DNA of 64,000 nucleotides from the sequence record MT135025.1; one strand, 5' to 3'. The notes beneath the pieces were generated by a model. It made no database searches. It was given only the letters and a program-made list of their open reading frames with translations, and was not told the origin of the DNA. The position numbers and the translations under genes were made by a program. This document shows positions 11,383 through 63,807 of this stretch, in pieces (position 1 is the first letter of the stretch; each line of letters begins with the position of its first letter).

Positions 11383-11383
11383 G

Positions 11384-12110: not shown

Positions 12111-12139
12111 TTGACTAAAGTGTAAAATATCCTTATCAT
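12111..12139 (+). promoter_or_regulatory. sigma70-type promoter
   Basis: TTGACT-17 bp-TATCAT. Confidence 0.65.
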
Positions 12140-12186
12140 AGTGCATATTCTAATGAAACGTACAAAAATACAACAAAGAGGTTAAC

Positions 12187-12603
12187 ATGACTCCAAAATC
12201 AATCATTCGTGCAGCAAATACTCGCGTGTCAGAGCTTCAAATCTTCAATGGCGAGAACAGTACAGTCGTAGTTGGTGCACCGGGCAGTGGCAAAAACGCT
12301 ATGCTGATGGGAATGCTCATGCAACGTGGTGTTGCTGACTGTACAATGATCGTTACAGAAATGCGTGCCGGTGACATGGCAGAGAAGCTAGGTGCTGGCT
12401 CGCTTGTCGTCAATGGCGGGGTTGAACTTGAATCTCTTGTTGGCGCAGTTGCATTTGCATGTACACAACCACGTACTGACATCTTCATCGAACATGTGTC
12501 ACCGATTCTCGGTCACAACATCGTTGAGATTCTAGAGTCAATCGCTAAGCCATTCAACAAGCGAATCTACGTCGGTATGCAAGCTTCGCGTGGTGGTCTA
12601 TGA
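12187..12603 (+). CDS. small P-loop-like protein
   Basis: VVVGAPGSGKN Walker-A-like motif; only 138 aa. Confidence 0.5.
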   Translation: MTPKSIIRAANTRVSELQIFNGENSTVVVGAPGSGKNAMLMGMLMQRGVADCTMIVTEMRAGDMAEKLGAGSLVVNGGVELESLVGAVAFACTQPRTDIFIEHVSPILGHNIVEILESIAKPFNKRIYVGMQASRGGL

Positions 12604-12875
12604 ACTTCTTTCAAATAAGCATGAATCTAGCGACTGATTCATCAATTAATCCAGACGAAGCATGGGCTGATAAGCAATTGATTATTGCTTCTAGTCACGA
12701 AATGGCTCGAAAACTTGCCGACGCACGCGAGAAAGGTCGTCATGGTTGGCATGACCCTAATGTGTGTTCTATCGACTATCTCTATGAGTTGCGCGATAAA
12801 GCACTTGAAGACAATGATCATGTCAGTGTGATGAACTACACTGCAATGATCGCTATGCGGGAGAGTGTACAATGA
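12600..12875 (+). CDS. conserved phage hypothetical protein
   Basis: MARKL..AREKGRHGW.D..C..L.....D.VSVMNYTAM pattern seen in many phages. Confidence 0.6.
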   Translation: MNFFQISMNLATDSSINPDEAWADKQLIIASSHEMARKLADAREKGRHGWHDPNVCSIDYLYELRDKALEDNDHVSVMNYTAMIAMRESVQ

Positions 12876-13912
12876 ACGTACTATTCACGAGTCTATTCGG
12901 CTCGAAACTATATGGCACAGACACGCCAGAGTCAGACACTGACTATAAAGCAGTCTATCTACCCGAGTTGCGCACGCTACTTCGTGGTGTTGCAATAAAG
13001 AACTCAGTGCATTCCACTGGCAAATCGTTCGAGAAGAACGGCGCAGACGATGAAGACTTCGAATACATCCCTGTTCAAGTGTTCATGCGTGACTTTCTCG
13101 GCGGTCAGTCATATGCAATCGAGTTAGCATTCAATGCACTACAGAACCCTGATGACTGTAAGCCAGAGTTCTACAACATGTGTAAAGAAATGACTCGCAA
13201 GTACTTGACATCAAACGTCAAAGCAATGACTGGCTATGCGCTTAACCAAGCACAGAAGTACGGCATCAAAGGTACTCGACTGAACAGCCTTATGCAATTT
13301 GCACGTGCTGTAGAGACGCACAACGTCGATCCTAAAGCGAAGTTGGGTTCAAGTCCTGAGTTGTGTAAGCAACTATGGGAACTGTGTGCAGAAGACGCTC
13401 ACGTGCGTTTTCAGTGGTATCATGGGCCCAAGACTAAAGACGCAAGCGACTTGAAAGACCCTGCGTTCAGTGTGCTTGAGAAAGTATTCGGTCTTGAGAT
13501 CACGTTTGAAGAAGCTGCCGGTCGTCTTGAGAAGATGATGAGCAAATACGGCGCTCGTGCATATCAAGCGCGTGCTGCAAGCGGCTCAGACTGGAAAGCA
13601 ATCTCTCATGCTATGCGCGTGATCGATCAAGCAATCGACATACTGACAGTTGGTAAGCTTGAGTTTCCGTTGAAGCACGCTGCGTTCTATCGTGACGTGA
13701 AACAAGGTAAATACAAGTGGGAATACGTGTCTGAAGTGCTGCAAGAGCGCCTTGAATTGCTCGAAAAAGCAAAAGATACAACGTCACTTCCACATCACAC
13801 GCCTGATTTGGTTGCGAGATTTTACACCTGGTACGATGATTACCTTGATGAGTTTTATTTCCCTTGTGAAATGACTGATGAAGAAGTCAAACAAATGCTA
13901 GGCGCGTACTAG
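12872..13912 (+). CDS. nrdC.11: nucleotidyltransferase, T4 NrdC.11-like (Pol beta superfamily)
   Basis: FGSKLYGTDTPESDTDYKAVY (GS..D.D), GYA..QAQKYGIKG.RL, DWKAISHAMR..Q. Confidence 0.8.
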   Translation: MNVLFTSLFGSKLYGTDTPESDTDYKAVYLPELRTLLRGVAIKNSVHSTGKSFEKNGADDEDFEYIPVQVFMRDFLGGQSYAIELAFNALQNPDDCKPEFYNMCKEMTRKYLTSNVKAMTGYALNQAQKYGIKGTRLNSLMQFARAVETHNVDPKAKLGSSPELCKQLWELCAEDAHVRFQWYHGPKTKDASDLKDPAFSVLEKVFGLEITFEEAAGRLEKMMSKYGARAYQARAASGSDWKAISHAMRVIDQAIDILTVGKLEFPLKHAAFYRDVKQGKYKWEYVSEVLQERLELLEKAKDTTSLPHHTPDLVARFYTWYDDYLDEFYFPCEMTDEEVKQMLGAY

Positions 13913-15985: not shown

Positions 15986-16315
15986 ATGAAATTTAAACTA
16001 CCAACGTTTACACGACCTAACTGGCTCGACAACACAATCATTCTTGCTGAAGAAGCAAAATCACATCCGCGCATCACTGCTGCTGTTCTTGTTGCTGTAT
16101 TAGCAATGGGTTATGTGACTTACACTCGTGTACCTGCAATTGCATCATGTACGTGGACTGCTGTTATCGACCAATCAGTGCCATGGGACTTGTGGCGCCA
16201 TAACATGTGGAACAACAACTGTCAGTACTACAATGGCACACGTTGGATTGCGCTAGAAAAAGTCATGGACGTTGGTGCAGGTCACACTGAAGAGCTTGAG
16301 GATCTAGCACAATGA
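15986..16315 (+). CDS. hypothetical membrane-anchored protein
   Basis: one hydrophobic helix; GAG SD. Confidence 0.7.
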   Translation: MKFKLPTFTRPNWLDNTIILAEEAKSHPRITAAVLVAVLAMGYVTYTRVPAIASCTWTAVIDQSVPWDLWRHNMWNNNCQYYNGTRWIALEKVMDVGAGHTEELEDLAQ

Positions 16316-16491
16316 TCTTAGCAACGGCTGAAGAAGTGCAAGAATACTTAGACAAAGCGCGTGCATGGTTATGCACGCCGTCTGGTAGAATGTTCAATGA
16401 TTGTAAGTCTGTTGCTCGTACTGCATACGCTGAAGCACTAGCAAATGTAGACGGTAAAACTATCTACAATCTGAGACAAACAGAAAATTAA
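16312..16491 (+). CDS. hypothetical protein (59 aa)
   Basis: Manual translation MILATAEEVQEYLDKARAWLC...; ATGA overlap. Confidence 0.55.
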   Translation: MILATAEEVQEYLDKARAWLCTPSGRMFNDCKSVARTAYAEALANVDGKTIYNLRQTEN

Positions 16492-16558
16492 CAACATATT
16501 CATATTATATTAATGAATATTATATAACATTTCGATAAATACAAGTGAGTGAAATATA

Positions 16559-17320
16559 ATGAGTATTGCAACTACATCCGGTCATCGCTTTGGTATGCTT
16601 GTTGAATCAATTGCAACGGGCTTACGTGGTACTGTAATTGGTATCACACAATGTATCGCGGGGTGCGAACTGCTTGAAGTTCAGTCAAAAGACAACAAAG
16701 GCATCGCCCGAACACACGTTTTTAGCTCAAAACTGGTTGAAATTATCAATTCTGACCGTGTAGATGAGTACGAAGCTATCTTTGCTGAGACTAATACGAC
16801 TATGCCGATTCGTCTTGGTGATGAAGTAGAAGACACAGTTTCAGAAGCGAAAGGGATCGTAACTGAAATTCAATACTCAGTGAATGCAGCACCGAATGTG
16901 CTTTTGATCAAGCCATACTCAGAGCATGAGACGAATATTTATGCATCTGCGCGAGTCATTAGCTGTAAGAAAACGGGTCACTCGATTCACGATAAGATCA
17001 TCAACAATCGTTTAAAACGTGAGCGTGATGAGCTTAAAGTGGAACTGCTGCAAAAAGCTCGATGCATGGCAACTGGCGCGACTGGCTTAGTCACTGCCAT
17101 TTTCAATCAAGCTAGTGGAACAATCTCAGTTGGCATTCAGCCCGTGAGTAAAGAGGGACGACTACTCGATACTCATTATACTGACATTGAATTAGTCGAA
17201 ATCATCACTGAAGAAGCAAAGCAAATCGTTCAACCGAAAGAGACAAAGCTGAAGAAAAGTGGCTCACTGCGCTCTCATGAACTGTCTTCGCTGAAACGCA
17301 GTGGTATGCATACAGTGTAA
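16559..17320 (+). CDS. protein with three tandem SH3/KOW-like repeats
   Basis: Three ~65-aa units (G..V....TG..G.V..I.......V..Q......LVEII); GATAAATA upstream. Confidence 0.6.
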   Translation: MSIATTSGHRFGMLVESIATGLRGTVIGITQCIAGCELLEVQSKDNKGIARTHVFSSKLVEIINSDRVDEYEAIFAETNTTMPIRLGDEVEDTVSEAKGIVTEIQYSVNAAPNVLLIKPYSEHETNIYASARVISCKKTGHSIHDKIINNRLKRERDELKVELLQKARCMATGATGLVTAIFNQASGTISVGIQPVSKEGRLLDTHYTDIELVEIITEEAKQIVQPKETKLKKSGSLRSHELSSLKRSGMHTV

Positions 17321-37351: not shown

Positions 37352-37731
37352 ACGATAACGAACTAAAAGGCTTACCAACTGACATCGACTTGCTAGAAAC
37401 AGCAATCATGTGCCTAAAGAACAAGCCTTATGATCAGCGACGTTTAGAGCATTTAGCAAATGTCATGTCTCGCGTTCAACCTCAAGTACTCAAGCGAAAA
37501 GCTGAACTTGATTGCTGGGCAGTTAAGCCATTCACGCGAATGGACATGAACAAACTCAAGATTGTACCAACGAACGGCGTATTTTATCAAGATCAGTTGA
37601 TTCACACGTACGATCTAGACGAGCAAGCATTACACATGCTTGATTATTTCAAAGAGAACGACATCAAATCATACGGTGAGTTTCTTGACCATCTTAGCGA
37701 ATTGGAGAATAAAGTATGCACGCAGGTGTAA
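37348..37731 (+). CDS. hypothetical protein
   Basis: ATGA-coupled ORF. Confidence 0.65.
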   Translation: MNDNELKGLPTDIDLLETAIMCLKNKPYDQRRLEHLANVMSRVQPQVLKRKAELDCWAVKPFTRMDMNKLKIVPTNGVFYQDQLIHTYDLDEQALHMLDYFKENDIKSYGEFLDHLSELENKVCTQV

Positions 37732-38696
37732 TTGGCAAGTTCAACAACTATCATCAAGGTCATTTCAAATTGATCAAGTTCGCGCTATCGCTTGCAGACA
37801 AAGTAACTGTTTTGCTTTGCACTGAAGACAGCGATCCGATTCCAGTTGAAACACGCATGAAATGGATGCACCAAGATTTCGGTAATCGTATTCGCATTAG
37901 TGTAATCTGCCCGAGTGATGAAAATCTCTCGAACAAATCAGAGTCTGATCGCGAAGTATCAAAGCAGTGGGCTGCTTTTATCGACGAGCGTTACCCTGAA
38001 ATTGATGCATTCGTTGGTTCTGAGCAATACATCAATTACTGTGCTGAGTACGGTAACTTTGACGGAATCATTTACGATGAAGCGCGAGAAATCACACCTT
38101 GCTCAAGCACTTCGGTTCGCGAGAACGATTCTCACGAGTTCTACAGCCCGAGCGCACAACAAGACCGAGTACGTCGAATTGCATTCATCGGTCCCGAGTC
38201 TTGTGGTAAGTCATGGAACGCAGCATCAATCGCAGCCGCTAACGGTTATGAACTCGTACTCGAAGCAGCACGCGACATCATGAGCGACAATCACTACACT
38301 GAACACGATATTCTTGAGTTCGCGATTGCACAAACTGCACGAATCGAAGCAACCGGTAAAGAAAGTGACACTGTAATCGTTGATTCTTCAGCTATTACGT
38401 CGGCAGTTTACAGTCAGTTTCAATTCAATCAATCATCGGTTCTTCTGAATGCATTAGCTGCTTTTGAAAACATTGATGCTTATGTACTCTTCCGACCAAA
38501 CTGTGAGTTTGTTCAAGATGGTACACGCACACAGACGCAAGAAGACCGCGAACGCTGGTTTGAACTTGCAAAGTCTATGCTTCTTCGATTGAACAAGCCA
38601 TTCTTGATTGTTCAGAAAGGCAATGATTGGGAAGAACGTTTACACGAAACGGCAAGTCATGTTTCACTACTGAGAGATAAAGTAAAATGGGTATAA
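37716..38696 (+). CDS. nadR: NadR-like NMN adenylyltransferase / nicotinamide riboside kinase
   Basis: GKFNNYHQGH (HxGH-like), IPVETRMKW, SSTSVR, P-loop GPESCGKS, FVQDGTR; 326 aa. Confidence 0.88.
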   Translation: MHAGVIGKFNNYHQGHFKLIKFALSLADKVTVLLCTEDSDPIPVETRMKWMHQDFGNRIRISVICPSDENLSNKSESDREVSKQWAAFIDERYPEIDAFVGSEQYINYCAEYGNFDGIIYDEAREITPCSSTSVRENDSHEFYSPSAQQDRVRRIAFIGPESCGKSWNAASIAAANGYELVLEAARDIMSDNHYTEHDILEFAIAQTARIEATGKESDTVIVDSSAITSAVYSQFQFNQSSVLLNALAAFENIDAYVLFRPNCEFVQDGTRTQTQEDRERWFELAKSMLLRLNKPFLIVQKGNDWEERLHETASHVSLLRDKVKWV

Positions 38697-39650: not shown

Positions 39651-40316
39651 ATGTTTGATTTACTGTTTAACATTAACCACACTGTGTTTTCAATTGGTGA
39701 TTATGCAGTGTCTGGTCTAGAACTCTGGGCAACTCTTACTGGTTTGATTTGTGTCATCATGGCACGAATGAATATGAAGCACAACTTCACAGTCGGCATT
39801 GTGAACTGTATCGGGTTCGCAATTCTGTTCTTCCAGATTCAGTTGTATAGTGACGTGCTCTTGCAGGGGTTCTTCATTGCAATGTCGATCTTCGGCTTCT
39901 ATCAATGGAACAAGCAAGGCACAGATGAAGTCAAAATCCGTTACTTGAAGATGCGTAAATTCGCAGGTTCGATTATAGCGACGTTGATCGGTACTGCGGC
40001 ACTCGCGTACTTCATCGACCCGATTATGAACTTCAGTGGTTCACTGCTTGTTACCGATTACGTACACGCCCCTGCTGAACTCGCTGTGCAAGATGCATTC
40101 ACGACTGTAGCAAGTATCATGGCATTTATGCTCATGATTCAGCGTAAAGTCGAAGCATGGTGGTACTGGGTTGCAGTAAACGTAGTGTGCATTGTGAACT
40201 ACAGCACGCAGGGCGTAATTGTAGTTGCTGCTGAATACTGCATTTTTCTAGCAAACGCGCTTTATGCAATCGTAATCTGGCATAAAGAAGGCATGAAAAA
40301 CGAGGCACAAGCATGA
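39651..40316 (+). CDS. pnuC: nicotinamide riboside transporter PnuC
   Basis: Multi-TM; ELWATLTGLICV, QLYSDVLLQ, DAFTTVASI..ML...RKVEAWWYW..VN; 221 aa. Confidence 0.92.
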   Translation: MFDLLFNINHTVFSIGDYAVSGLELWATLTGLICVIMARMNMKHNFTVGIVNCIGFAILFFQIQLYSDVLLQGFFIAMSIFGFYQWNKQGTDEVKIRYLKMRKFAGSIIATLIGTAALAYFIDPIMNFSGSLLVTDYVHAPAELAVQDAFTTVASIMAFMLMIQRKVEAWWYWVAVNVVCIVNYSTQGVIVVAAEYCIFLANALYAIVIWHKEGMKNEAQA

Positions 40317-46563: not shown

Positions 46564-46841
46564 TGCAGTACACACTTGATTTACTCAATGAAAAGCTTGA
46601 ATCCCTCAAGTCAGAACAATTTGGTTGGGTTGTTGCATTACCTAAAAAAGAAGGTGATGACATTGCAACTGTTCAGAAAATCATTACTGACATTGCAGTT
46701 CAGATTACATCAATCGAGCACGATATTAAACTCATCGAAGCATCACGAGGTCTAAATGCAAGAGTAGTTAAGCAAATCGTCGATGAACATTACCGCGAAC
46801 ACTACAAACTTGACGAAAACGACAACTTTATCGGAGATTAA
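46563..46841 (+). CDS. hypothetical protein
   Basis: TAATG-coupled ORF. Confidence 0.6.
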   Translation: MQYTLDLLNEKLESLKSEQFGWVVALPKKEGDDIATVQKIITDIAVQITSIEHDIKLIEASRGLNARVVKQIVDEHYREHYKLDENDNFIGD

Positions 46842-46842
46842 C

Positions 46843-47667
46843 ATGGAAATTGAAATCGAGCGCAAATGGCTAGTTACTGCTGAACAGTATCGTGAATTCG
46901 TAAACTGGATGCATTATCGCGATAACGGCGCCACTTCAATGAACATCTTTCAGCGTTATTTCAAGAAAGATGAGATCTCATTCGTCGATGGCTCGTTTTA
47001 CATCAACAGTCGAGTGAAGGAAGGTCGCGGTTATTTGATTAAAGCACCGAAAGACTGTCCTGATCTAACTGGCGTGAATCTACGCAAGCTAGGTGCGCGT
47101 ATGCGACTAACCACGTCTGAAAACTTCATTGACAAGCTTGAATTCACAATCAAGATTCCACACGGTGACGGCATTGCCAAGCGTGAAATCAATATCCCAC
47201 TTGAATCTGGTTATGCAGACTTGATCACAGATTCGATTGAGAAAGATGACAAGCTAAATCGCAATACAACCGAAGTCGTCCCGACGGGATTGATTAAAAA
47301 GGTTCGGTGGTCAGGTGAAGTTGACGACGTACATTACGATGCTGACCGTTTCACGAATCGACCTTTTTACATAATCGAAGCTGAATTCAAAGATGAAGCT
47401 GAAGCTGAAGCATTCGTCTCACCTTTTGAGTTCATTCGCGAGGTGACGGAAGACAAGCGATTCAGCAACAAGCGAATGGCATGGAATCACGATGCCGCCG
47501 ACGGGTTGGCTAGTAATATTCGTCTTTATGTCGAGAAGCTTGAGAAAGAAGCGAATGCATTGCGAAGTGATACGCTAGTATCAATGCGTGAAAGCGTAAC
47601 GAACGAAATCATGGCAGAACGTTACGAGAAAATTGCTCGTGACTTAAAACACATTGTAGGTGCGTAA
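46843..47667 (+). CDS. CYTH (triphosphate tunnel metalloenzyme)-like protein
   Basis: ExExK motif EIEIERKWLV, R.R, TIK, REINI, KVR, D.F....IIEAEF, EVTEDKRFSN..MA. Confidence 0.75.
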   Translation: MEIEIERKWLVTAEQYREFVNWMHYRDNGATSMNIFQRYFKKDEISFVDGSFYINSRVKEGRGYLIKAPKDCPDLTGVNLRKLGARMRLTTSENFIDKLEFTIKIPHGDGIAKREINIPLESGYADLITDSIEKDDKLNRNTTEVVPTGLIKKVRWSGEVDDVHYDADRFTNRPFYIIEAEFKDEAEAEAFVSPFEFIREVTEDKRFSNKRMAWNHDAADGLASNIRLYVEKLEKEANALRSDTLVSMRESVTNEIMAERYEKIARDLKHIVGA

Positions 47668-48151: not shown

Positions 48152-48784
48152 ATGAAGATCAATAAATTTCAAGTAGACGGCAAGCCATTCTTGATGATTG
48201 ATGACTTTCTACCTAGTGAAGTTGTTGATGAAATCGAGGACACGTTAAAATCAATCAACGATTGGGATCACGCCGACAACATCTTTGACTTCAATACGAT
48301 TGTCAAAGACAAAACCGCGATACTGCAAGGTGACCAATATCGCTTGCGAACTGGTGTGTTAGCTGAACTTGCCGAATCGACGCTCGACCGAATTCTTGAA
48401 ATACTCGAAACTGAATTCGGATGCAAGTACGATAAAGACGTTCTTCGTAAAATCAACGAATGGGAATATGCGTTTCGTTTCAATACATCGTATTATGAAA
48501 AAGTAAACGATGAAATGCTGTTTCATTATGACAGCAAAGGCGTAACATTCATGTATATGCCATGCGACCAGCATGACGACGGTACGTATTTCTTCGCTGA
48601 CGGTGATCGTGACAAGCACGTATACACTCTGAAGCATAAGCGCGGGTCAGTTGCGATATTCAATGCAAGTGATATTATGCATTGCAGCGCGAAGCCGTCA
48701 CCGCTTGATGACTACCGATACACTATGGTATGGCAGTTTGTATTCCCGTCTCATCTTAAACCAATTAGAGAAGTAATCGCATGA
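48152..48784 (+). CDS. 2OG-Fe(II) dioxygenase-like protein (paralog 1)
   Basis: HYD...GTYF...KRGSVAIFNASDIMHCS...RYTMV (HxD...H...R). Confidence 0.7.
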   Translation: MKINKFQVDGKPFLMIDDFLPSEVVDEIEDTLKSINDWDHADNIFDFNTIVKDKTAILQGDQYRLRTGVLAELAESTLDRILEILETEFGCKYDKDVLRKINEWEYAFRFNTSYYEKVNDEMLFHYDSKGVTFMYMPCDQHDDGTYFFADGDRDKHVYTLKHKRGSVAIFNASDIMHCSAKPSPLDDYRYTMVWQFVFPSHLKPIREVIA

Positions 48785-49395
48785 AATACGAAAAATTTCA
48801 AATCGACGGGTGCGCGTTTGTATTGATTGAAGATCTATTGCCAGAAGAGTTGGTTGAAAAACTTGATAAAGCAATGAAGAAAGAACTTGCATGGCAACAC
48901 GACGACAACATTTTTAAGTTTTGCCATTACGTTAAAGATCGTTCAGCAACTCTTCAAGGTGATATGTTTGAACTTGCCGATGATCCAGAGTTGACTGAAC
49001 TTTCAGATCAGCTACTACAACACGTTTTGGATTTCATCAAAGCTGAGTTCAATCACGAGTTCACGATTGAAGAACTAAAGCCGATATTTTCTCGCGAACG
49101 AATTCACCGATACAAACCGCATTACTACGACAATGCAAAAGGTAACTTGCTGTATCATAAAGATGCGTGGATGACTATTTTCTACATGCCAGATGCGTAT
49201 GCAGATGAAGGCACTCATTTTTATGCAAATGAAGACCCAGAACAGCTTGTTTACACGCTGAAGCACAAACGTGGTATGATTGCGTTATTCAACGGTGACA
49301 TTCTACACGCACCAGCTAAGATGTCAGAAACAGACACAAATAGAATTGTGTTGACTATGCAATATCATACTCATATTCAAGACATAATCTCATAG
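48781..49395 (+). CDS. 2OG-Fe(II) dioxygenase-like protein (paralog 2)
   Basis: HKD...GTHF...KRGMIALFNGDILHAP...RIVLT. Confidence 0.7.
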   Translation: MKYEKFQIDGCAFVLIEDLLPEELVEKLDKAMKKELAWQHDDNIFKFCHYVKDRSATLQGDMFELADDPELTELSDQLLQHVLDFIKAEFNHEFTIEELKPIFSRERIHRYKPHYYDNAKGNLLYHKDAWMTIFYMPDAYADEGTHFYANEDPEQLVYTLKHKRGMIALFNGDILHAPAKMSETDTNRIVLTMQYHTHIQDIIS

Positions 49396-55317: not shown

Positions 55318-55346
55318 TTTCCGATGCGGGTTGTTACGACATCCCG

Positions 55347-55354
55347 CATAAATA
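55347..55354 (+). promoter_or_regulatory. T4-type late promoter (CATAAATA) overlapping a hairpin
   Basis: One mismatch to TATAAATA; stem ATGCGGG/CCCGCAT at 55324-55349. Confidence 0.55.
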
Positions 55355-55386
55355 GTTCTATATGGACTAACAAGGAAATTACGACA

Positions 55387-55917
55387 ATGCCAACTCCTAC
55401 AACAGGTGCGATTTCAATCGGTACCGTTCGTGATTATTTCAGTAGAACCGGCGCTGCTTCATTGTCTCAGTACTACAGAGGCGGCGGTATTGTTCCTGAT
55501 ATTACTGAAAATGCTCACGTACCAACTTCAGGCGCAATTAGCTTGAATGACTTGCGCGGTGTATATCGCTTGTCAACGTATACGACATCATTTACGACAA
55601 CATACAACACCACTGTATCAACATCGAATACGACTTCGCGTAGTACGTCAAGAAGTACAACTAGAAGTACTGCATACAGTACAACTCGTTCGACTTCATA
55701 TACCACGACATACAACACGTCTGTTACTACGTCAGTAACGAAAGGTTCGTATACAACGACATACGCAACATCACGTGCCACGACTCGTTCAACTGCTTAT
55801 GACACAACACGTTCAACCGCTTATACGTCTACATGGACGACATCGTGGACAACGACATACAACACAACGTATTCAACATCAAACACAACCTCGCGAAGCA
55901 CGCAAGTTGCAGTTTAA
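55387..55917 (+). CDS. Ser/Thr tetrapeptide-repeat protein with N-terminal virion-type module
   Basis: AAGGA SD; N-term GAIS...SLSQYYRGGG.VP...VPTSGAISLNDLRG; C-terminal 114 aa with 72 Ser/Thr by manual count. Confidence 0.8.
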   Translation: MPTPTTGAISIGTVRDYFSRTGAASLSQYYRGGGIVPDITENAHVPTSGAISLNDLRGVYRLSTYTTSFTTTYNTTVSTSNTTSRSTSRSTTRSTAYSTTRSTSYTTTYNTSVTTSVTKGSYTTTYATSRATTRSTAYDTTRSTAYTSTWTTSWTTTYNTTYSTSNTTSRSTQVAV

Positions 55918-55929
55918 CAGGGTTAAATT

Positions 55930-56148
55930 ATGAGCTACAATGAAGAACACGAGAGCCGAATCAACGAGCTTGAGAACAAGGTTTCAAAGCTTGAGTTGAT
56001 AATTGAAAATCTGGTTGAGTCAATGACTTCGAACAGCGAAGCTATTATCGAACATATTGCATCACTTGAGACCGAGAGAGATTCGATTCTTGCATCATAT
56101 GATGACAAACTTAATGAGATCGTGACCAAATATGAACCCAAGCAATAG
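55930..56148 (+). CDS. small coiled-coil protein
   Basis: heptad pattern RINELENKVSKLELIIENL. Confidence 0.65.
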   Translation: MSYNEEHESRINELENKVSKLELIIENLVESMTSNSEAIIEHIASLETERDSILASYDDKLNEIVTKYEPKQ

Positions 56149-56986
56149 AGAAATGACTGGGTTCAATAACATTTCTCGCATCGGTAAGTTGAAATTACAA
56201 GCCGATGCAGACAACGTCCGTGCCATGTGTATGGACGTTGTTCGTTTATTGAACTCCAAAAATATACCATCTAACTTCGACATCAATCATAATGACGGTG
56301 GTAACATCGGCGTGCATGAATGGGTGTCACAAATCCGCTTCATTCACTTGAAATACATGAACGTTAATTTCCAAACGAAGATTTTCAAGCATGCCTATCA
56401 TAACACTGAAAACGTCGTTGACTATTTTGACACGTTCAAACATTCTGACAAATATCATCTATCAGCGAAGCCTAGATTTTTAGAATATGAAAACGTCGTA
56501 TTTCTATGTGGATCGAATGTACTTGAATTGGCAATTGACTTTGACAAGATTGATACGCTGGTCGAACAATATCCCGATTTAGTGATCAAACCTCACCCGA
56601 TTACGACGCTGTATTACATTAATATGCTTAAAACTCGATATGGATCGAAGCGCGTGCTTTCTCAGAAGATCAGCGGTGTTGATGTTCTTAAATCTGCTAA
56701 ACGTGTTTGGCTGCCTTCAACGTCTGAGTTCTGGTTTAGTGCCTTGAACTACGACAAAGAAATCGGGTTTATCTCTAAAGATGGTTTCTGTGGAACGTAC
56801 ACGTCAATCATCAACGCAGTATGGGAATTGCATGAAGAAACCGGTGAGCCATTGAAAGATATTGTGAATAAAATTATATCGTCACCTTACTCAGGTCTGT
56901 ATGGTAGTATGGCAGACTTTGAAGAGCATCACGAGAAATACTGTAATGTGATTCTGGAACTAGGGGGTAATTTCGATAATGTATGA
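56132..56986 (+). CDS. putative GT-B-like transferase (KpsC/KpsS-type C-terminal motif)
   Basis: LVIKPHP, SGVDVLKSAKRV...STSE.WF.AL..DKEI pattern; family call tentative. Confidence 0.4.
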   Translation: MNPSNREMTGFNNISRIGKLKLQADADNVRAMCMDVVRLLNSKNIPSNFDINHNDGGNIGVHEWVSQIRFIHLKYMNVNFQTKIFKHAYHNTENVVDYFDTFKHSDKYHLSAKPRFLEYENVVFLCGSNVLELAIDFDKIDTLVEQYPDLVIKPHPITTLYYINMLKTRYGSKRVLSQKISGVDVLKSAKRVWLPSTSEFWFSALNYDKEIGFISKDGFCGTYTSIINAVWELHEETGEPLKDIVNKIISSPYSGLYGSMADFEEHHEKYCNVILELGGNFDNV

Positions 56987-57611
56987 TTATGTAATTCACA
57001 CTTCGATTAGTGACAAAAGTCAGTTAAACCAACTAGCAATGTTTGTCGGGTCTTTCATCGAGACACACAAAAAAGGTCGCGTGGTCTGCGTGACGGATCT
57101 TGAACTTGATTTCACGATGCCTCGACTGACATTTGAGAAAAAACTGCCAGACGAGTACGTTTTCATTTCAGTTGACAATCTATTTTTGCAAAAAACATAC
57201 GGCGTTGTTAGCTACATTGACAGTGGTACTTGGCGATGTACTTGGCAAAAGAATGATCATGATGATTTCGTTATTAAAAAGCATGGTGAAAGAAGCGGAT
57301 TGATTCACCCTGATATTGCAATTGCAAATTACAATGTTTCCAGACATGGCGATCTCGACATGTATTACAACGCGCTTCGTTACATTGAGAACGCCATCAC
57401 GATCAACTGCAAAGACTTTGCTCCTGCTGCTGAGAATAAAATCAACAGCTTTTACACGCTTGTATTTCCATGGGAGATTTATTTTCACGTTATGATCACT
57501 TACCAAGAGTATATTGATTCTGAATACGTTGAGCGAGTTCGCGCTAACTGTCATAAGTTCGCACACTCGGTTTATTACAGAAAATCAGGGTTGTTGCGTG
57601 ATGGGTTATGA
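56979..57611 (+). CDS. hypothetical protein, possibly GT-A-like
   Basis: VVCVTD ... FISVDNLF resembles a degenerate DxD region; weak. Confidence 0.3.
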   Translation: MYDYVIHTSISDKSQLNQLAMFVGSFIETHKKGRVVCVTDLELDFTMPRLTFEKKLPDEYVFISVDNLFLQKTYGVVSYIDSGTWRCTWQKNDHDDFVIKKHGERSGLIHPDIAIANYNVSRHGDLDMYYNALRYIENAITINCKDFAPAAENKINSFYTLVFPWEIYFHVMITYQEYIDSEYVERVRANCHKFAHSVYYRKSGLLRDGL

Positions 57612-58284
57612 TGAGATAATTTTAGTATCTGGTCTTGATAGTTTAGTTCTATATGAATTTCTTGAACGAAAGCCACACCCTGTTTACTTTAAATGGGGTT
57701 TTGCTATCGACGAACTTGAAATGGCTTCTTTGCCTGAAGAAACAACGATCATAGAAATGCCAGATATTTTGCATTTGAGGCATGATCCGCATGAGTTCAA
57801 GACGCCAAGAAATCCCGATTTGATTGGTCGGAATACGTTGATGTTTAACTCAGTTTTTCATGCATTCAGACCGAACGTAATTTATCGCGGGATGTTGAAA
57901 GGTGATGATTTCTATTACGACGCATCGCCTACGCATTCAGATGAAATCGCAGCTATGTGGTCGAAAATGCTGAATAAAGAGTGTCGAATTGAACAACCGT
58001 TTAAAGACAAAACGAAACGTGACATAATGCAAATGGCAGTCGAATACGGTATTGATGCGAATTCATTGCAGCATTGTTACAATCGAGAACACAACTGCGG
58101 TCGATGTAGCAAGTGTGTGGATGCACATGTTAATTCTATGTACACCGACAACCCAGACATCATGTGGCTGAGACGAATAGTTAATGACTCAGGTATGACA
58201 TCAATGGCTAATCACATGTTTGGTGTTGATACAGTTGACAGAATAAAGGAATTTCTAGATGAATTTGATCGAACAGACCGCTGA
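57601..58284 (+). CDS. QueC-like PP-loop ATPase with Zn site
   Basis: LVSGLDS PP-loop, PFKDKTKRDIMQMA, HCYN...CGRCSKC. Confidence 0.7.
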   Translation: MGYDEIILVSGLDSLVLYEFLERKPHPVYFKWGFAIDELEMASLPEETTIIEMPDILHLRHDPHEFKTPRNPDLIGRNTLMFNSVFHAFRPNVIYRGMLKGDDFYYDASPTHSDEIAAMWSKMLNKECRIEQPFKDKTKRDIMQMAVEYGIDANSLQHCYNREHNCGRCSKCVDAHVNSMYTDNPDIMWLRRIVNDSGMTSMANHMFGVDTVDRIKEFLDEFDRTDR

Positions 58285-59152
58285 TAAATTTGAGCATAGT
58301 TACCGAGAAGACGTTCAAGGCGTACAGTGGTATTTCGGTAGTCGAACGCATGATTTTTATCTGTATGGAATAGACTCTCTTATTGATAAAGTCAAAGACT
58401 GTGATTTTATTGAAATCAAGCATGTTCAAGAGGGTACGCTGGTTAAACGAGGCGAAGCTGCGGTCACGGTTACGATTACAGATCATAGTCGTATCGCATA
58501 TGGGAACATGATTGAAACATTGTTGTACAATGAGTTGTGGTATTCGAGCACGGTCGGTACGATTTTACACCGTTGTCTTGATGTGTTGCATGAAAACGGC
58601 TATGACGCTCGTTCAGCATACCCTCAAATCGGACGGGCGAGTTCAACGCCAGAACAGTCAGCTAAAGCAAGGGATGTGTTCGCACGTATATTTTATCAAT
58701 CGTCGAATGAGAAAATACCCGTTGCGATGCACAGTGATATTTTAATCAACGGTGAGGAATATTGCATGGAACATTATAACGGCATCATGATTGATACTTT
58801 CGATAAGCAAGCTTGCATTGACTTGATCAACAAGAAAGACTTTCGAGGGACTGTGATGGTTGACTCTCAGCCAATAATTGAAACAATTGAGAAAGTTCTA
58901 GCTGAAACAAAATGCTTTGTTGCACAAGCTGAAAGTGTTACACTCGATGAGTGGATAGAGATAGTGCGACATTTTAAAGGTAATAAGCGAATTTTCTACG
59001 GGATTGGTAGCTTTGCATTTAGCAATATATCACGAGACACATTTGGTTTGATTTACAAAGTGTGTGCAGTTAAGAAAAACGACAACTGGATCGGAGTTTC
59101 AAAGATGACGACAGGTAAACAAACATCGGCTGGTTATAAGGTTATAGGTTAG
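58259..59152 (+). CDS. divergent nicotinate/nicotinamide phosphoribosyltransferase-fold protein
   Basis: ADKF, EGTLV..GE..V.V, ETLL.N..WY.STVGT, MHS, IDTFD, VDS, YGIGS, IYKVCAV, SK.T.GK.T.AG. Confidence 0.6.
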   Translation: MNLIEQTADKFEHSYREDVQGVQWYFGSRTHDFYLYGIDSLIDKVKDCDFIEIKHVQEGTLVKRGEAAVTVTITDHSRIAYGNMIETLLYNELWYSSTVGTILHRCLDVLHENGYDARSAYPQIGRASSTPEQSAKARDVFARIFYQSSNEKIPVAMHSDILINGEEYCMEHYNGIMIDTFDKQACIDLINKKDFRGTVMVDSQPIIETIEKVLAETKCFVAQAESVTLDEWIEIVRHFKGNKRIFYGIGSFAFSNISRDTFGLIYKVCAVKKNDNWIGVSKMTTGKQTSAGYKVIG

Positions 59153-59154
59153 TT

Positions 59155-60144
59155 ATGAATTATTGTATAGCGCCGTTTACATCGCCGTCTATTACGCCAG
59201 ACGGTTTTAAAATTTGCAGCATGCCAGGTCAGAAAGTATACCCTGATATTTCATTCTGGAATAGTGATGAAGTGATCAAAATTCGCGAACAGATTATCGC
59301 TGGTGAAATTCCTGAATCGTGCAAGGCATGTCGTAGTATGCGTGACGGGTTGATTGTGTCAAAAGAAAAACCAACTGATACTCATGTTGACTTGAATTTC
59401 AAAGCTCTTTACATTGCGCGGTCGAACAAGTGTGAATATGCTTGTGAAATGTGCAGTTCATCAATCTCACATAGCTATGACAAGAAATACAATGACGGTA
59501 AGTTGGGGATTATTGAGAATGACTTTGATGTTATTCCGTATCTGCACGAAACACAAGCCGTTGCTATTTCGGGCGGGAACCCTGTCATTGACAAAAAGGT
59601 TGCAGAGATTCTTGAGAATCTAGACCCTGACGTGGTCGAACATTTCATCATTACATCAAACGGGACAGTCTTTCCAGACAGATTCTTGAATGCAATTAAG
59701 CGATTGAAATGTGACGCGACTTTGATATTCTCTATGGACGGACCGAAAGAGTTTAATGAAGTGGTTCGATCTGGTGCGAAGCAAGAGAGAATCTATCGCA
59801 CCATTAATCGAGTTCTTGACGAGATTGAAGATTACCCAAACTTGCATGTGGCAATTGAGTATACTTTCACGAATAAGTCAATTCATCACTACGTTGATTT
59901 GTATGATGAAATGCTCTTCGAGATCAACCCGAAGCATTTGAAAAACAACTCAGTTAAAGTGATTGCGAATATGTGTACATACCCGCATCACCTTAGCGTT
60001 ACAACTGTTCCCAAATCCGTCATTGATGACATATTGTTCAATCAGTTGCCGTATTTGAGACAGCAACCCAGCCCATTGTCAAATCAATTCAAACTTGGCT
60101 ATGATAAGTTTTTGACTCAGTATCACAACAGCGTGATTATGTGA
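59155..60144 (+). CDS. radical SAM protein with N-terminal Cys-rich (twitch-like) domain
   Basis: CxxxCxxC = CEYACEMC; GGNP, ITSNGT, FSMDG; N-term YCIAPF...C...WNS...IR..I..GE.P.SCKAC. Confidence 0.85.
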   Translation: MNYCIAPFTSPSITPDGFKICSMPGQKVYPDISFWNSDEVIKIREQIIAGEIPESCKACRSMRDGLIVSKEKPTDTHVDLNFKALYIARSNKCEYACEMCSSSISHSYDKKYNDGKLGIIENDFDVIPYLHETQAVAISGGNPVIDKKVAEILENLDPDVVEHFIITSNGTVFPDRFLNAIKRLKCDATLIFSMDGPKEFNEVVRSGAKQERIYRTINRVLDEIEDYPNLHVAIEYTFTNKSIHHYVDLYDEMLFEINPKHLKNNSVKVIANMCTYPHHLSVTTVPKSVIDDILFNQLPYLRQQPSPLSNQFKLGYDKFLTQYHNSVIM

Positions 60145-61261
60145 TCAGATCATACGCTTTGATATGTGAGTAAAACTCTGGACACGCAGACGATAAATTA
60201 GTTTTCGTCTTCGTGTCTATTCTTTTGTTAAGAACAAAGAATTCAGGGTTGAATTTACAAACACTGTGTTCCAGAGTAAGACATTCAGCAACGTGCTTGA
60301 ATGGTCTAGCCAAATCCTCACGCCCATCTTTTAAATACGCTTCTTCTTTCACTTTGAATCTTGATAATAGCTGGTCTCGAAATGCAACTGGAATGTTGTA
60401 AATTGAGTATGGATTATCAGGCTCACCGACGACATGTACAGACAAACGTACACGTTTACCATCATAAAGCGAATCAAAATCTGAAACCAATGTTTCAAGA
60501 TGTTCAAGAGTCACGTTTGACACGGTCGCAGTGATAACTACATCAAAGTGTTGCTTGATGACTTCAATGTTTGATTTGACTTTCTTGATGTCTGCAAACA
60601 ATCGAATATAATCTTGGTATTCTCGTAGACCGTCGATTGATACGAACACCGTTGATGCATTAGCTTCTTTAAGCGATTTGATGAGATCTGAGCCATCGGC
60701 TAACACTAGTGATGAGCCATTCGTGAAAATATTCACTGCGCCTTTAATGTCGCCTACGTTGCGAAGAACTTCAGGAGCATTTGACGAGCGGGTAATTTCA
60801 CCGCCTAGAATTGTCAATGACGAAAGTCCTTTGCTGATTGTGTTGATTGTCGTACTCAAATCATTGAATCGAGTACTTGAATCTTCTTCATTGAACAATC
60901 TAGCCTTCAAGTCTGATAATTTGCTGTAGCAGTAACGACAAGCTTGATTACATTCATTACTAGGGAATACTTGTAGCCAGCGAACTGAATCAGCGGGCAT
61001 AATAGGTGAAACTTCAGAATCGTGTTCTGTTAGACGCTGTGGGTCATTATCAGTAATGCACATTTGACATGCCTTTGACAGCTTGCTCATGTCGTGGTTT
61101 AGCATTGCTTCACGATAAGCGACAAGCTTTTCATCATTCCAAGCGTCTGCTAGTGTTTTTTCATCAGTAAACCATTCATAATCAGCCGAACAGCAAAACG
61201 TAATTTGATTGTTTGCTCGTGTGATGAACTGCTTGAACGGCATATAACATAGTGGTTTCAT
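60137..61261 (-). CDS. radical SAM protein with N-terminal Cys-rich (twitch-like) domain
   Basis: CxxxCxxC = CNQACRYC; LGGE, FTNGS, VSIDG...YIR; N-term LCYMPF...CC...AWN...YR..ML....CQMC. Confidence 0.85.
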   Translation of the reverse strand: MKPLCYMPFKQFITRANNQITFCCSADYEWFTDEKTLADAWNDEKLVAYREAMLNHDMSKLSKACQMCITDNDPQRLTEHDSEVSPIMPADSVRWLQVFPSNECNQACRYCYSKLSDLKARLFNEEDSSTRFNDLSTTINTISKGLSSLTILGGEITRSSNAPEVLRNVGDIKGAVNIFTNGSSLVLADGSDLIKSLKEANASTVFVSIDGLREYQDYIRLFADIKKVKSNIEVIKQHFDVVITATVSNVTLEHLETLVSDFDSLYDGKRVRLSVHVVGEPDNPYSIYNIPVAFRDQLLSRFKVKEEAYLKDGREDLARPFKHVAECLTLEHSVCKFNPEFFVLNKRIDTKTKTNLSSACPEFYSHIKAYDLIT

Positions 61262-61271
61262 GTTTCTGTCC

Positions 61272-61844
61272 TTAGTTAAAAATGCTACTTGTATATATAG
61301 CAGTCTTCAGGGCATTGAAATGATCGTCAACTCTATTCACGTGTATGCATTCAATGTCAAATCTTTCTTGGATTTCTCGGATGTTGTCTAGCGAGTCGTC
61401 GATGAAGTATTTCACCTCATGCAGTTCACACAGCTTCTCGACATACTTTGCCTTCGAGTCGAAGTACTCAATCGAAATCACCTCACTTATCATCCCTGGG
61501 AATAACGCATTTAGATTATACACGCGATTTGACCATGAAGTTCTACTCATGCTGAACTTGGTTAGTGCAATGATGTTATATCGGTCTGAGAGTTCGCGTA
61601 ACGCATCGTAAGCGTCTTCATATGCGGGTATGTACTTTGCACACTCATGTTCATTGTATGCGCCTATAAGCTTTCCTAGTTGCATGTCACTCACGTTAAT
61701 AAATAAAGAGCGTGCATCGGTATCAGTATTTGAACCGTTGATATTCAAATTATCAAGCATGCCTAATTGCATCATGAAGAATGGCAAGTTGGCTTTCCAG
61801 TTAAGCAAAACCCCGTCTACATCTATGATGATCGTCTTTTTCAT
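61272..61844 (-). CDS. HAD-like protein, T4 gp30.2-like
   Basis: KTIIIDVDGVLLNW, IALTK, R..NL..LFP, FIDD..DNI. Confidence 0.7.
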   Translation of the reverse strand: MKKTIIIDVDGVLLNWKANLPFFMMQLGMLDNLNINGSNTDTDARSLFINVSDMQLGKLIGAYNEHECAKYIPAYEDAYDALRELSDRYNIIALTKFSMSRTSWSNRVYNLNALFPGMISEVISIEYFDSKAKYVEKLCELHEVKYFIDDSLDNIREIQERFDIECIHVNRVDDHFNALKTAIYTSSIFN

Positions 61845-61879
61845 TACTACCTCGAAAAAAATTAAAATTTTTCGAAAAA

Positions 61880-61914
61880 AAGTATTGACACTTAGTTTCG
61901 TTCATGTAATACTT
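61880..61914. promoter_or_regulatory. quasi-palindromic (divergent) sigma70-type promoter
   Basis: AAGTATTGACA-N14-TGTAATACTT; TTGACA-17 bp-AATACT on +, TTACAT-17 bp-AATACT on -. Confidence 0.5.
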
Positions 61915-62313: not shown

Positions 62314-63807
62314 ATGCTAAATCTTAATCAAAATATCGCAATCGCAACTGACAGTTACAAAGTTTCACACTGGTCTCAATTCCCTCGTGGTCTAGAGTAC
62401 AGCCAATATTACGTCGAAAGCCGGGGTGGTAAGTTCGACAAAATTATGGTCGACGGTATGGCATACATGTGTCGTATTCTCGAAAAAGGTGTTTCGATGA
62501 ACGATGTCAAGCGTGCGAAACGTCTGTTCAAAAAGCACTTCGGTTCTGAAGTCTTCAATGACAAGGGTTGGGACATCATCGTTAACGAACTGAAAGGCAA
62601 ACTGCCTATTAAGATTCGTGCGGTCAAAGAAGGTACTGTAGTACCAGTTAAACACCCTATCTTGACGATTGAGAACACTGATCCACGTTTTGGTTGGCTG
62701 CCTGGCTATCTTGAAACGTTCATCTTGCGTGCTCTTTGGTACCCGACGACTGTAGCAACGATCTCGTTCGAGGTGAAGAAAATCATTCGCCAATTCATGA
62801 AGAAAACGGTTGATGATGAACGCATTGCAGAACAAGAGCCATTCAAACTTCACGACTTTGGTTCTCGTGGTGTATCAAGTGGCGAATCTGCGGCTATCGG
62901 TGGCTCTGCTCACTTGAAAAACTTCTTGGGTACTGACACTGTAGAAGCACTTGTTGCAGTTGAAGAACTTTACGCTGAAGATGTTGAAGACTTCATTGCA
63001 GGATTCTCAATCCCTGCACGTGAACACTCAACAACTACAATCTACAAAGAAGCTGGTGAAGACCAAGCATTCTTGAACTCTATTGAGCAATGGGGTGCTG
63101 CATTATACGCTTGTGTAATGGACAGCTACGACTACGAAGCAGCAATGAATCGTGTCTCGACTGGTCGCTTCAAAGAGCTAATCATCAGCAAAGGCGGTAC
63201 GTTTGTTGCTCGTCCTGACTCTGGTGTGCCTGTAGATGTAGTAATGAAAGGTCTTGAGATTCTTGGTAAAAACGTTGGTTATACAATCAACAGCAAGGGT
63301 TACAAAGTATTGCACCCTAGCTACCGTATCATTCAAGGTGACGGCGTGAACATCGAAGAAATTCGTCGAATCTTGTCTTACATGGAAAGTAAAGGCTGGT
63401 CGGCAGAAAATATTGCATTCGGCATGGGTGGTGGGTTGCTTCAACAACTTGACCGTGATACTCAACGCTTTGCAATGAAAATGTCAGCGGCAATCATCAA
63501 CGGCGAATACGTTAGCGTGTTCAAAATGCCGAAGACTGATCCGACAAAAGCATCAAAAGCAGGTTTCTTGGATTTGATTGCAGTTGATGCAGACAATCCG
63601 AACCCAGCGGCTCGCGGTTACGTGACGTTCTCTTCTGAAGATTACGACAATCGCGTACACTCGAAAAGCGTGATGCAGACAATCTTCGAAGACGGTGTAA
63701 CAGTTGCCGACTTCTCACTAGAAGAAGCGCGTAAACTGTCTGACGTACAAGCTGATTTCCTGAACGAAGGTGAATGGAAAATCGCGAAAAAGATTCAAAC
63801 TGCGTAA
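62314..63807 (+). CDS. nadV: nicotinamide phosphoribosyltransferase (NadV/Nampt)
   Basis: ATDSYKVSHW.QFP, LHDFGSRGVSS, FSIPAREHST, VARPDSG, IIQGDG, NIAFGMGGGLLQ..DRDT..FAMK; 497 aa. Confidence 0.95.
   Translation: MLNLNQNIAIATDSYKVSHWSQFPRGLEYSQYYVESRGGKFDKIMVDGMAYMCRILEKGVSMNDVKRAKRLFKKHFGSEVFNDKGWDIIVNELKGKLPIKIRAVKEGTVVPVKHPILTIENTDPRFGWLPGYLETFILRALWYPTTVATISFEVKKIIRQFMKKTVDDERIAEQEPFKLHDFGSRGVSSGESAAIGGSAHLKNFLGTDTVEALVAVEELYAEDVEDFIAGFSIPAREHSTTTIYKEAGEDQAFLNSIEQWGAALYACVMDSYDYEAAMNRVSTGRFKELIISKGGTFVARPDSGVPVDVVMKGLEILGKNVGYTINSKGYKVLHPSYRIIQGDGVNIEEIRRILSYMESKGWSAENIAFGMGGGLLQQLDRDTQRFAMKMSAAIINGEYVSVFKMPKTDPTKASKAGFLDLIAVDADNPNPAARGYVTFSSEDYDNRVHSKSVMQTIFEDGVTVADFSLEEARKLSDVQADFLNEGEWKIAKKIQTA

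Follow-up and report, generated by a model that had tools for sequence, protein, structure and literature searches.

A threonine-repeat fiber-like protein and linked enzyme genes of KVP40-type vibriophages: a candidate fiber-modification system

We examined a block of genes in a 64,000-nucleotide stretch of sequence record MT135025.1, referred to below as the window. The block lies within positions 55324-61900, a segment that is 100% identical to Vibrio phage V07, a KVP40-type phage, and 98.2% identical to positions 131224-137800 of KVP40, where its counterpart comprises genes KVP40.0254 to KVP40.0262. These genes are labeled hypothetical, save for generic radical S-adenosylmethionine (SAM) and QueC-like designations; their products are lettered A to I here (Table 1). 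We tentatively favor the explanation that A to I form one fiber-modification system with two layers, namely, an A-B-C module that recurs in distant phages and the genes D to I, added in vibriophages. An earlier note on this DNA, made from the sequence alone, had proposed that six tailoring enzymes install an unusual modification on the Ser/Thr array of a virion-displayed fiber. All of its open reading frames (ORFs) were found where it had placed them; taken as a whole, its observation was partly confirmed and its interpretation partly supported. The linkage of a Ser/Thr-repeat protein to at least one sugar-transferase-like enzyme held, since an A/B/C-like order recurs in distant phages beside or within tail-fiber genes.

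The threonine-repeat protein and its recurrent partners

Ser and Thr account for 63.2% of the C-terminal 114 residues of A, exactly the figure of ~63% given in the earlier note. Residues 63 to 176 consist of ~28 tetrapeptides arranged around a central Lys-Gly, with Thr dominant at position 1, Thr or Ser at position 2, and Arg, Tyr, Trp, Asn, Val, Ser, or Thr at positions 3 and 4. The lag-4 autocorrelation of the non-Ser/Thr positions was 0.484, a value reached by none of 10,000 shuffles (shuffle maximum, 0.36). The homologues of A in QD01, D484, F86, and D479 also display a four-residue period (autocorrelation of 0.41 to 0.55). The central Lys-Gly turn is common to the homologues, with two flanking Cys residues in D484, F86, and D479. 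A is the sole ORF of such composition within the 64 kb, and a literature search for Thr-rich phage fibers returned none. The homologues of A are unannotated in D484 (L004 6757-7290), F86 (L005 from 6690), and D479 (L006 6787-7299), and short spurious ORFs are called over the repeat in these three phages.

Residues ~1 to 60 of A match the N termini of small phage proteins, among them those of phages of Stenotrophomonas, Xanthomonas, and Ralstonia. The small proteins of DLP_6 and RTH11, whose C termini are unrelated to A, are encoded directly downstream of tail-fiber genes, and the same N-terminal domain heads a 1032-residue Thr-rich protein of the metagenomic T4-like contig L016. This domain of ~60 residues probably anchors A to the virion. 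The earlier note had compared the locus to the layout of ribosomally synthesized and posttranslationally modified peptides (RiPPs). This comparison was not borne out, as A is 176 residues long, its N-terminal domain is conserved, and a recognition domain was not detected; moreover, its relatives reach 1425 residues and share the N-terminal domain with fiber-locus proteins.

A profile search identified 24 further relatives of C, and distant C homologues were detected in Caulobacter phages. Outside the Vibrio phages, the contexts were those of marine T4-like contigs and Caulobacter phages. Contigs L016, L019, L020, and L021 encode, in this order, a Thr-rich protein, a short helical protein, and a homologue of C. 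In L016, the 1032-residue protein (34% Thr, A-type N-terminal domain, and A-like repeats) is followed by a 75-residue acidic helical protein, C, and gp13/14/15. In the other three contigs, proteins with 33 to 39% Thr precede helical proteins of 48 to 58 residues and then C; the Thr-rich protein has 947 residues in L021 and 1425 residues in L019, and the L020 contig ends within its copy. The gene orders elsewhere were tail fiber, T/S/Y/R/W-rich 215-residue protein, and C homologue in phage Lullwater; fiber protein, T/Y-rich 116-residue protein, C homologue, and neck protein in phage Cr30; and fiber, T/Y-rich 137-residue protein, C, tail assembly chaperone, and gp13/14/15 in L013. In L015, the C homologue follows a short helical protein, and the neighbors do not include a Thr-rich protein. 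Tail-fiber or neck genes thus adjoin the module in Cr30, Lullwater, L013, and L016. The B-like proteins of L015, L016, L019, L020, and L021 are acidic, Glu/Leu-rich, 48 to 76 residues long, and coiled-coil-like by eye. For B itself, described earlier as a coiled coil, only its composition and weak matches point to that structure.

A full HMMER scan assigned to the C family 380 representative clusters among 1.84 billion. The recurrence of the triad in fiber-gene contexts, together with these representatives, marks it as a widespread unnamed module, to which D to I are a vibriophage-specific addition. Judged from these independent replicates in distant phages, the link between A, B, and C is well supported. 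This layer is best read as a fiber accompanied by its own transferase, and a virion-displayed fiber would fit the tail-fiber setting of the triad. The flanks read around the triad loci outside the vibriophages contained no QueC-like, NAMPT-like, or radical SAM genes, and no radical SAM gene was found within 8 to 9 kb of the Thr-repeat proteins of other phages. The co-occurrence of a Ser/Thr-repeat protein with QueC-like, phosphoribosyltransferase-like, and radical SAM genes, which the earlier note had named as a check, did not recur in these loci. In L016, an 887-residue multidomain GT1/GT2 protein (10659-13322) flanks the Thr-repeat module, and a sulfotransferase (16061-16687) is encoded between the neck and terminase genes, which hints at elaborate virion glycan chemistry.

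The structure of C was modeled with AlphaFold2 from an alignment of 25 sequences, giving a predicted local distance difference test (pLDDT) score of 79 and a predicted template-modeling score of 0.80; an alignment of 3 sequences gave a pLDDT of 38. Nearly all of the top 50 Foldseek matches of this model in the PDB are GT-B sugar-nucleotide enzymes (transferases and UDP-sugar 2-epimerases), including SdgB, LpxB, KpsC, WbbB, KrkA, WaaC, and UDP-GlcNAc 2-epimerases, with probabilities of 0.95 to 0.99, a best E value of 2.2e-3, and TM-scores of 0.27 to 0.41. In a viral structure library, C matched giant-virus glycosyltransferases and a capsule-synthesis protein. At the sequence level, C matched GT52 (PF07922) with an E value of 5e-4 in one of five members only; at 19.7 bits versus a cutoff of 26.1, this match is short of membership in a curated glycosyltransferase sequence family. 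Sequence and profile searches of the PDB with C returned no matches, and single-sequence searches of a 5.8-billion-protein set with C or with E returned KVP40-like copies only. Among 25 diverse sequences of the C family, Lys107, Tyr108, Gly127, Asn129, Lys153, His155, Pro156, Glu199, and Gly255 are invariant, forming Lys-x-His-Pro, Glu, and Gly-x-Asn motifs. On the basis of the model, C is read as a GT-B-type transferase. It is possibly of the CMP-ulosonic-acid type, the His-Pro motif being what we take to be a mark of such enzymes.

The earlier note had described two glycosyltransferase-like ORFs, C and D. The assignment of C was upheld by the GT-B fold and the weak GT52 match. Searches of D against Pfam, NCBIfam, PADLOC, and the PDB, the last including a five-sequence profile, gave no match. 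The sole PHROG of D is a vibriophage-only family of unknown function, identity across the vibriophage lineages is 32 to 70%, and hhalign comparison with the downstream neighbors of C in L016 and L019 showed no relationship. Since D has no detectable relatives, a second glycosyltransferase is unsupported.

The locus is similar to those of SdgA/SdgB, which modify Ser-Asp adhesins in Staphylococcus, and of GtfA/B, which modify serine-rich adhesins, in that a GT-B transferase lies beside a hydroxyl-rich, short-period surface repeat; SdgB is also the best Foldseek match of C by E value. Unlike the dipeptide targeted by SdgB, the repeat of A is a Thr-rich tetrapeptide, and C, which is phage encoded and has a predicted activity only, displays Lys-x-His-Pro and no sequence-level GT4 match. 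Among the GT-B transferases of the beta-Kdo and sialic-acid types (KpsC, WbbB, KrkA, and GT52), WbbB provided the best TM-score and probability (0.41 and 0.99, respectively), the weak GT52 match covers the His-Pro region of C, and one member of the C family weakly matches a polysialyltransferase; C is shorter (284 residues), however, and all scores are below the family cutoffs. The KVP40-type cluster has no CMP-sugar synthetase, and D484 and F86 have a weak NTP-transferase-like gene only. Mycobacteriophage glycosyltransferases act on capsid and tail proteins, as echoed in PMC11256854. The present locus is similar in that a phage-encoded transferase would decorate a virion protein; the protein families, the target (a dedicated repeat fiber), and the host group differ, and glycosylation is putative here.

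The enzymes linked to the module in vibriophages

Three further lineages (the D484/6E35 group, F86, and D479) have colinear A-to-G genes, with protein identities of 32 to 55%; NadV is ~85% identical in D484 and F86. In tblastn searches, the N-terminal domain of A, as well as C, E, and F, each gave hits in 35 Vibrio phage records, the same phages being listed for all four, and in no other vibriophage; this supports the earlier interpretation. Related phages such as nt-1 have none of the four. In D479, the block lies in another neighborhood, near an NMNAT-Nudix gene, and A to F, G, and I are still contiguous in a rearranged order, with G upstream of A and I directly after F. H is the least stable member, with 25% identity in F86 and a shorter ORF in the D484 group; D479 has a different radical SAM gene and no close H counterpart near the cluster. 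Within the block, D484 and F86 contain extra genes, including the weak NTP-transferase-like gene and a paralogue of tandem genes of the window. These tandem paralogues (48152-48784 and 48781-49395) match phrog_274, and one of them weakly matches a 2-oxoglutarate (2OG)-Fe(II) oxygenase PHROG (1e-5). Homologues of the pair lie within the cluster of D484 and F86, between E and F; in D479, they immediately follow I. Assignment of the D484/F86 gene as a 2OG-Fe(II) oxygenase was a guess by eye that we rejected, as there is no Pfam match and the window paralogue alone has the weak PHROG match.

E belongs to the QueC family, with a PP-loop and four zinc-binding cysteines, in agreement with the earlier description of a QueC-like PP-loop/Zn enzyme. 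In searches of the PDB, Cap9 (9nto_B) was the sole solved structure matched with an E value better than 0.01 (2.4e-5 with the single sequence and 4.4e-5 with the profile, over nearly the full length); the E value for canonical QueC 2pg3 was 0.044. The score of E against the TIGR00364 equivalog was 28.7 bits for a cutoff of 150.3, and the Pfam QueC match (PF06508) spans the C-terminal half only. Canonical QueC has an SGGxDS PP-loop, a C(x)8CxxCxxC zinc motif, and the substrate motifs YxQxHxxE, VPxRN, and YPDC (PMC13329287). The PP-loop of E (S-G-L/I-D-S) and its four invariant cysteines (C-x6-C-x2-C-x2-C) are slight variants of the canonical motifs. Of the substrate motifs, E keeps the Arg of VPxRN and the Tyr and acidic residue of YPDC, and has another invariant block in place of YxQxHxxE. 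The base that Cap9 attaches to a protein N terminus is 7-carboxy-7-deazaguanine, which it holds with R86, Y115, and D117 (preprint 10.1101/2025.04.06.647259), residues with which the Arg, Tyr, and Asp/Glu of E align.

Although E shares with Cap9 (type IV CBASS) and QatC, both QueC-family ligases of 7-carboxy-7-deazaguanine and a protein amine, the PP-loop, the zinc cysteines, and this base-binding alignment, it is phage encoded, its identity to them is low, and library scans of the block detected no TGT-like Cap10, CD-NTase, QatA, QatB, or QatD. In the cluster, PADLOC recognized only the QueC model, besides weak matches to radical SAM cores of the viperin type. Supplementary Data 1 of PMC6884629 names E (NP_899504) as the QueC that serves DNA modification in KVP40. 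We ruled out that E is the ordinary QueC of KVP40, since KVP40.0124 fills this role: it passes the equivalog cutoff (173.2 versus 150.3 bits) and adjoins QueD, FolE, DpdA2, and a QueF-like gene. Given a canonical KVP40.0124, the score of E, and an identity of 21% between the two proteins, E is a spare, divergent paralogue. By these scores, KVP40.0258 (E) is not the canonical QueC of the phage, and its annotation should be corrected. A complete 7-deazaguanine DNA-modification cluster, composed of QueD, FolE, DpdA2, QueF-like, canonical QueC, and glutamine amidotransferase-like genes, lies at 69.6 to 75.0 kb of KVP40 (L022 17645-23006), just upstream of the window. KVP40 thus encodes the enzymes for making the Cap9 substrate, 7-carboxy-7-deazaguanine. 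IMG/VR, scanned with E and the F profile, and the JGI metagenomes, scanned with the E and F profiles, yielded only KVP40 itself and a single unrelated QueC-like fragment (L018).

F is the divergent phosphoribosyltransferase of the earlier note and, more precisely, a short NAMPT-family protein. It matches PF04095 with 28.5 bits versus a cutoff of 20.8. The F family profile has Namat (9w5x/9w5w) as its nearest solved relative (E value of 6.7e-10), with weaker matches to bacterial and human NAMPTs (5e-8 to ~1e-4). Comparison with the NadV of the window by hhalign gave a probability of 96.4% over NadV residues 84 to 419, with the invariant His158 of F aligned to a NadV His that we take to be catalytic. 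F keeps several ribose-phosphate-site motifs and is 48 to 76% identical to its vibriophage homologues, with many invariant residues. In Namat, the nicotinamide pocket comprises Phe189, Arg192, Asp215, and Arg306 together with Asp13' and Tyr15' of the partner subunit (PMC12774641). Residue 49 of F aligns to Namat residue 107, so that Namat residues 13 and 15 have no counterpart in F; the complete pocket is therefore not found in F, whose alignment lacks the first 60 to 80 residues. Between the Phe/Arg motif and the His, F is largely gapped relative to NadV, including the region of the nicotinamide-binding Asp. F probably acts on a different acceptor. Thus, F belongs to the family of Namat (NARP1) and NAMPT/NadV, with the His and ribose-phosphate motifs retained, but differs in its length (297 versus ~490 residues), the missing N-terminal partner-site segment, and the lack of an Adps partner. 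A NARP1-type role for F with Adps was rejected, since the block contains no PRPP-synthetase-like gene. In phage phi-pp2 (JN849462.1 133480-134371), the match to F is in two pieces with 93.9% identity, and it is unbroken in the other listed records; either the phi-pp2 gene has a single interruption or the record has a sequencing error, perhaps.

The radical SAM enzymes described earlier, with auxiliary cysteines, are G and H. Their best model by far is NF033640 (119 and 127 bits, respectively, for a cutoff of 170), a family on which we found no literature. Each contains four N-terminal cysteines (4, 21, 56, and 59 in G; 5, 23/24, 65, and 68 in H) followed by CxxxCxxC (93, 97, and 100 in G; 104, 108, and 111 in H). 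Many of their other weak matches are to SPASM/twitch peptide maturases, such as PapB, WgkB, CbpB, HxsB/C, and SkfB; Pfam and NCBIfam scans detected no recognition domain in G or H. Outside the window, KVP40.0272-0274 (L010 4445-6767) includes a third N-terminal twitch radical SAM gene (135 bits), adjoining a gene noted in the KVP40 record as a match to PF00534 (glycosyltransferase group 1). This would be a possible second sugar/radical SAM pair in the genome.

Gene layout, upstream signals, and neighboring genes

The tight coupling reported in the earlier note was found on the + strand, where the genes are separated by gaps of 12 and 2 nucleotides and otherwise overlap by 8 to 26 nucleotides, and in the tail-to-tail overlap of 8 nucleotides between G and H. 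The late-type promoter motif that it had described, CATAAATA, is located at 55347-55354, ~32 nucleotides 5' of the ATG of A and partly within the hairpin, and has only two occurrences in 128 kb (both strands of the window). It is kept in KVP40 and QD01, whereas D484 and F86 retain the TAAATA core only and D479 has nothing similar. The motif provides weak support for late expression of A. Scans for sigma-70 promoters and terminators gave chance-level results.

Table 1. Features of the A-to-I block in window coordinates
Feature	Position	Strand	Basis or remark
Hairpin and late-promoter-like CATAAATA	55324..55354	+	GC-rich, 7-bp stems at 55324-55349, upstream of A
A, 176 aa, fiber-like	55387..55917	+	Anchor-type N-terminal domain 1-62; repeats 63-176
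B, 72 aa, acidic helical, coiled-coil-like	55930..56148	+	Composition, weak matches
C, 284 aa, GT-B-fold glycosyltransferase-like	56132..56986	+	Invariant Lys-x-His-Pro; AlphaFold2/Foldseek
D, 210 aa, orphan	56979..57611	+	Conserved in vibriophage clusters only
E, 228 aa, divergent QueC-family PP-loop ATPase	57598..58284	+	Zn-binding Cys4; closest to Cap9
F, 297 aa, minimal Namat/NAMPT-like phosphoribosyltransferase	58259..59152	+	Pfam, profile to Namat, hhalign to NadV
G, 329 aa, radical SAM	59155..60144	+	N-terminal four-Cys (twitch-type) domain
H, 374 aa, radical SAM, same family as G	60137..61261	-	Converges on G
I, 190 aa, HAD-like, T4 30.2-like	61272..61844	-	Upstream of H, same orientation

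The annotated start seems to be wrong in two genes. For KVP40.0254, it is the ATG at 55324, within the hairpin, and the start at 55387 has a ribosome-binding site and fits all homologues. KVP40.0256 is annotated 31 codons short (56132-56224), and the N-terminal Gly-Phe-Asn block is invariant among five vibriophage homologues. Record sizes also vary, with 349 kb for V07, 157 kb for V05, 159 kb for TCU-VP04-AIR2, and 69 kb for TCU_VP02_YC, versus ~245 kb for KVP40; these four assemblies are probably misjoined or partial.

Several genes related to nicotinamide adenine dinucleotide (NAD) lie in the same window. NadV is encoded at 62314-63807, 470 nucleotides beyond I. A NadR-like nicotinamide mononucleotide (NMN) adenylyltransferase/kinase (37716-38696) and a PnuC-like transporter (39651-40316) are encoded 1 kb apart, and a 294-residue CYTH (triphosphate tunnel) protein, unannotated in KVP40, is found among the NAD-related genes (46783-47667). 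The pairing of NadR-like and PnuC proteins is that of the phage NAD+-restoring pathway NARP3, described in 2026 (PMC13464706). From these assignments, two NAD+ routes appear to be present in the window (NadR-like/PnuC and NadV). The statement of the earlier note that none of the genes fits the NAD pathway was too strong, since F is nearest to Namat and I resembles T4 30.2.

Competing explanations and implications

In the explanation that we favor, the first layer (A-B-C) would be an old phage module. A would be a small fiber or whisker protein, anchored in the virion by its N-terminal domain and carrying the Thr-rich repeat array at its C terminus, B would be a short helical partner, and C would most likely O-glycosylate the hydroxyl-rich array, by analogy with the action of SdgB on Ser-Asp repeats. 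The second layer (D, E, F, G, H, and I), found in KVP40-like vibriophages only, would most likely build or elaborate an unusual group on the fiber or on its glycan. E would activate a heteroaromatic carboxylate with ATP and join it to an amine in a Cap9-like manner, 7-carboxy-7-deazaguanine being the candidate substrate; F would attach a phosphoribosyl-type group to some base different from nicotinamide; G and H would perform C-H chemistry; and I would remove phosphate. Modification of the fiber is plausible. A narrower proposal, in which the virion fiber bears a nucleobase-derived group, with E joining 7-carboxy-7-deazaguanine to an amine of the fiber or glycan, F ribosylating it, and the radical SAM enzymes tailoring the product, seems to us quite unlikely.

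Several observations weigh against a single system. The catalytic steps, the acceptor, and the presence of A in the virion are what we infer, and the roles of D to I are drawn from linkage in one phage group. T4-like genomes pack unrelated genes head to tail, so that adjacency and overlap are weak evidence of joint function. E and F were not found outside these phages, and their linkage to A therefore has no independent replicate; the triad occurs elsewhere without D to I, which are therefore not needed for such fibers. D is, by the searches described above, an orphan, and no PDB match of C was better than an E value of 1e-3. An acceptor amine was not identified, and a conserved N-terminal Gly, such as Cap9 and QatC use, is absent from the cluster proteins. 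The theme of the surroundings is NAD, with NadV, NadR-like, PnuC, and CYTH proteins. These neighbors and the Namat-like character of F make a small-molecule pathway nearly as likely as a fiber system.

Such a pathway is a real possibility, although we would not bet on it at even chances. A, B, and C, perhaps with D, would then be a fiber module unrelated to E to I, and the latter would form a small-molecule 7-deazapurine or pyridine-nucleotide pathway that could serve DNA or tRNA modification, NAD+ restoration, or counter-defense. F might, for instance, convert a carboxylated base to a mononucleotide, which E could amidate and I could dephosphorylate. PP-loop relatives such as LarE and NAD+ synthase act on pyridine carboxylates; the nearest solved relative of F is an NAD+-rebuilding enzyme, NadV and the NadR-like/PnuC pair lie in the same window, and the D479 block is located near an NMNAT-Nudix gene. 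The listing of E as the QueC for DNA modification and the occurrence of the triad without the E-to-I enzymes also agree with two separate units. However, the dpdA2 cluster of KVP40 already includes a canonical QueC, and DNA modification in nt-1 takes place without E. Asp13' and Tyr15' have no counterpart in F, and its region for the nicotinamide-binding Asp is unaligned. A, C, E, and F are present all or none, and the block holds together in D479. Two twitch-type radical SAM enzymes are not known from any NAD or queuosine pathway.

The two remaining explanations concern the fiber layer. C could be non-enzymatic, being a fiber assembly factor or minor structural protein with a Rossmann-like fold, and A would then be an unmodified Thr-rich beta-structured fiber. 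This is suggested by the position of the C homologues, which is that usual for tail-fiber assembly genes and, in L013, beside the tail assembly chaperone, as well as by the modest Foldseek E values, the low TM-scores, and a GT52 score under the Pfam cutoff. We consider it unlikely, because the invariance of Lys107, Lys153, His155, and Glu199 in 25 diverse sequences is typical of a catalytic or nucleotide-binding site, and because GT-B sugar-nucleotide enzymes make up nearly all of the PDB matches, with giant-virus glycosyltransferases and a capsule-synthesis protein among the viral ones. The least probable explanation is a strict RiPP-like maturation, in which G and H would cross-link or epimerize the repeats of A, as do the paired maturases of the His-Xaa-Ser system. 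The repeat is regular, with aromatic or Arg residues at fixed positions, G and H weakly match the maturases named above, and maturation of a repeat protein by radical SAM enzymes has precedent (PMC13128918). The maturase matches are, however, far below their cutoffs and reflect the common radical SAM core only, radical SAM genes are lacking within 8 to 9 kb of the Thr-repeat proteins in other phages, H is poorly conserved or replaced among vibriophages, and neither a leader nor a recognition domain was seen.

Whichever of these explanations holds, E and F are each likely to have a new substrate. The vibriophage block unites a spare QueC paralogue and a stripped-down relative of Namat/NAMPT, and it is only recently that nucleobase conjugation to proteins and NAD+ rebuilding were demonstrated for relatives of these two enzymes. 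If the nucleobase-bearing fiber were real, it would represent a new class of virion hypermodification and the first nucleobase-protein conjugation encoded by a virus. The triad itself is an uncharacterized module without a Pfam family, located mostly within or beside tail-fiber genes in the contexts examined. If the fiber is glycosylated, the module would provide aquatic phages with a widespread means to coat a receptor-facing structure.

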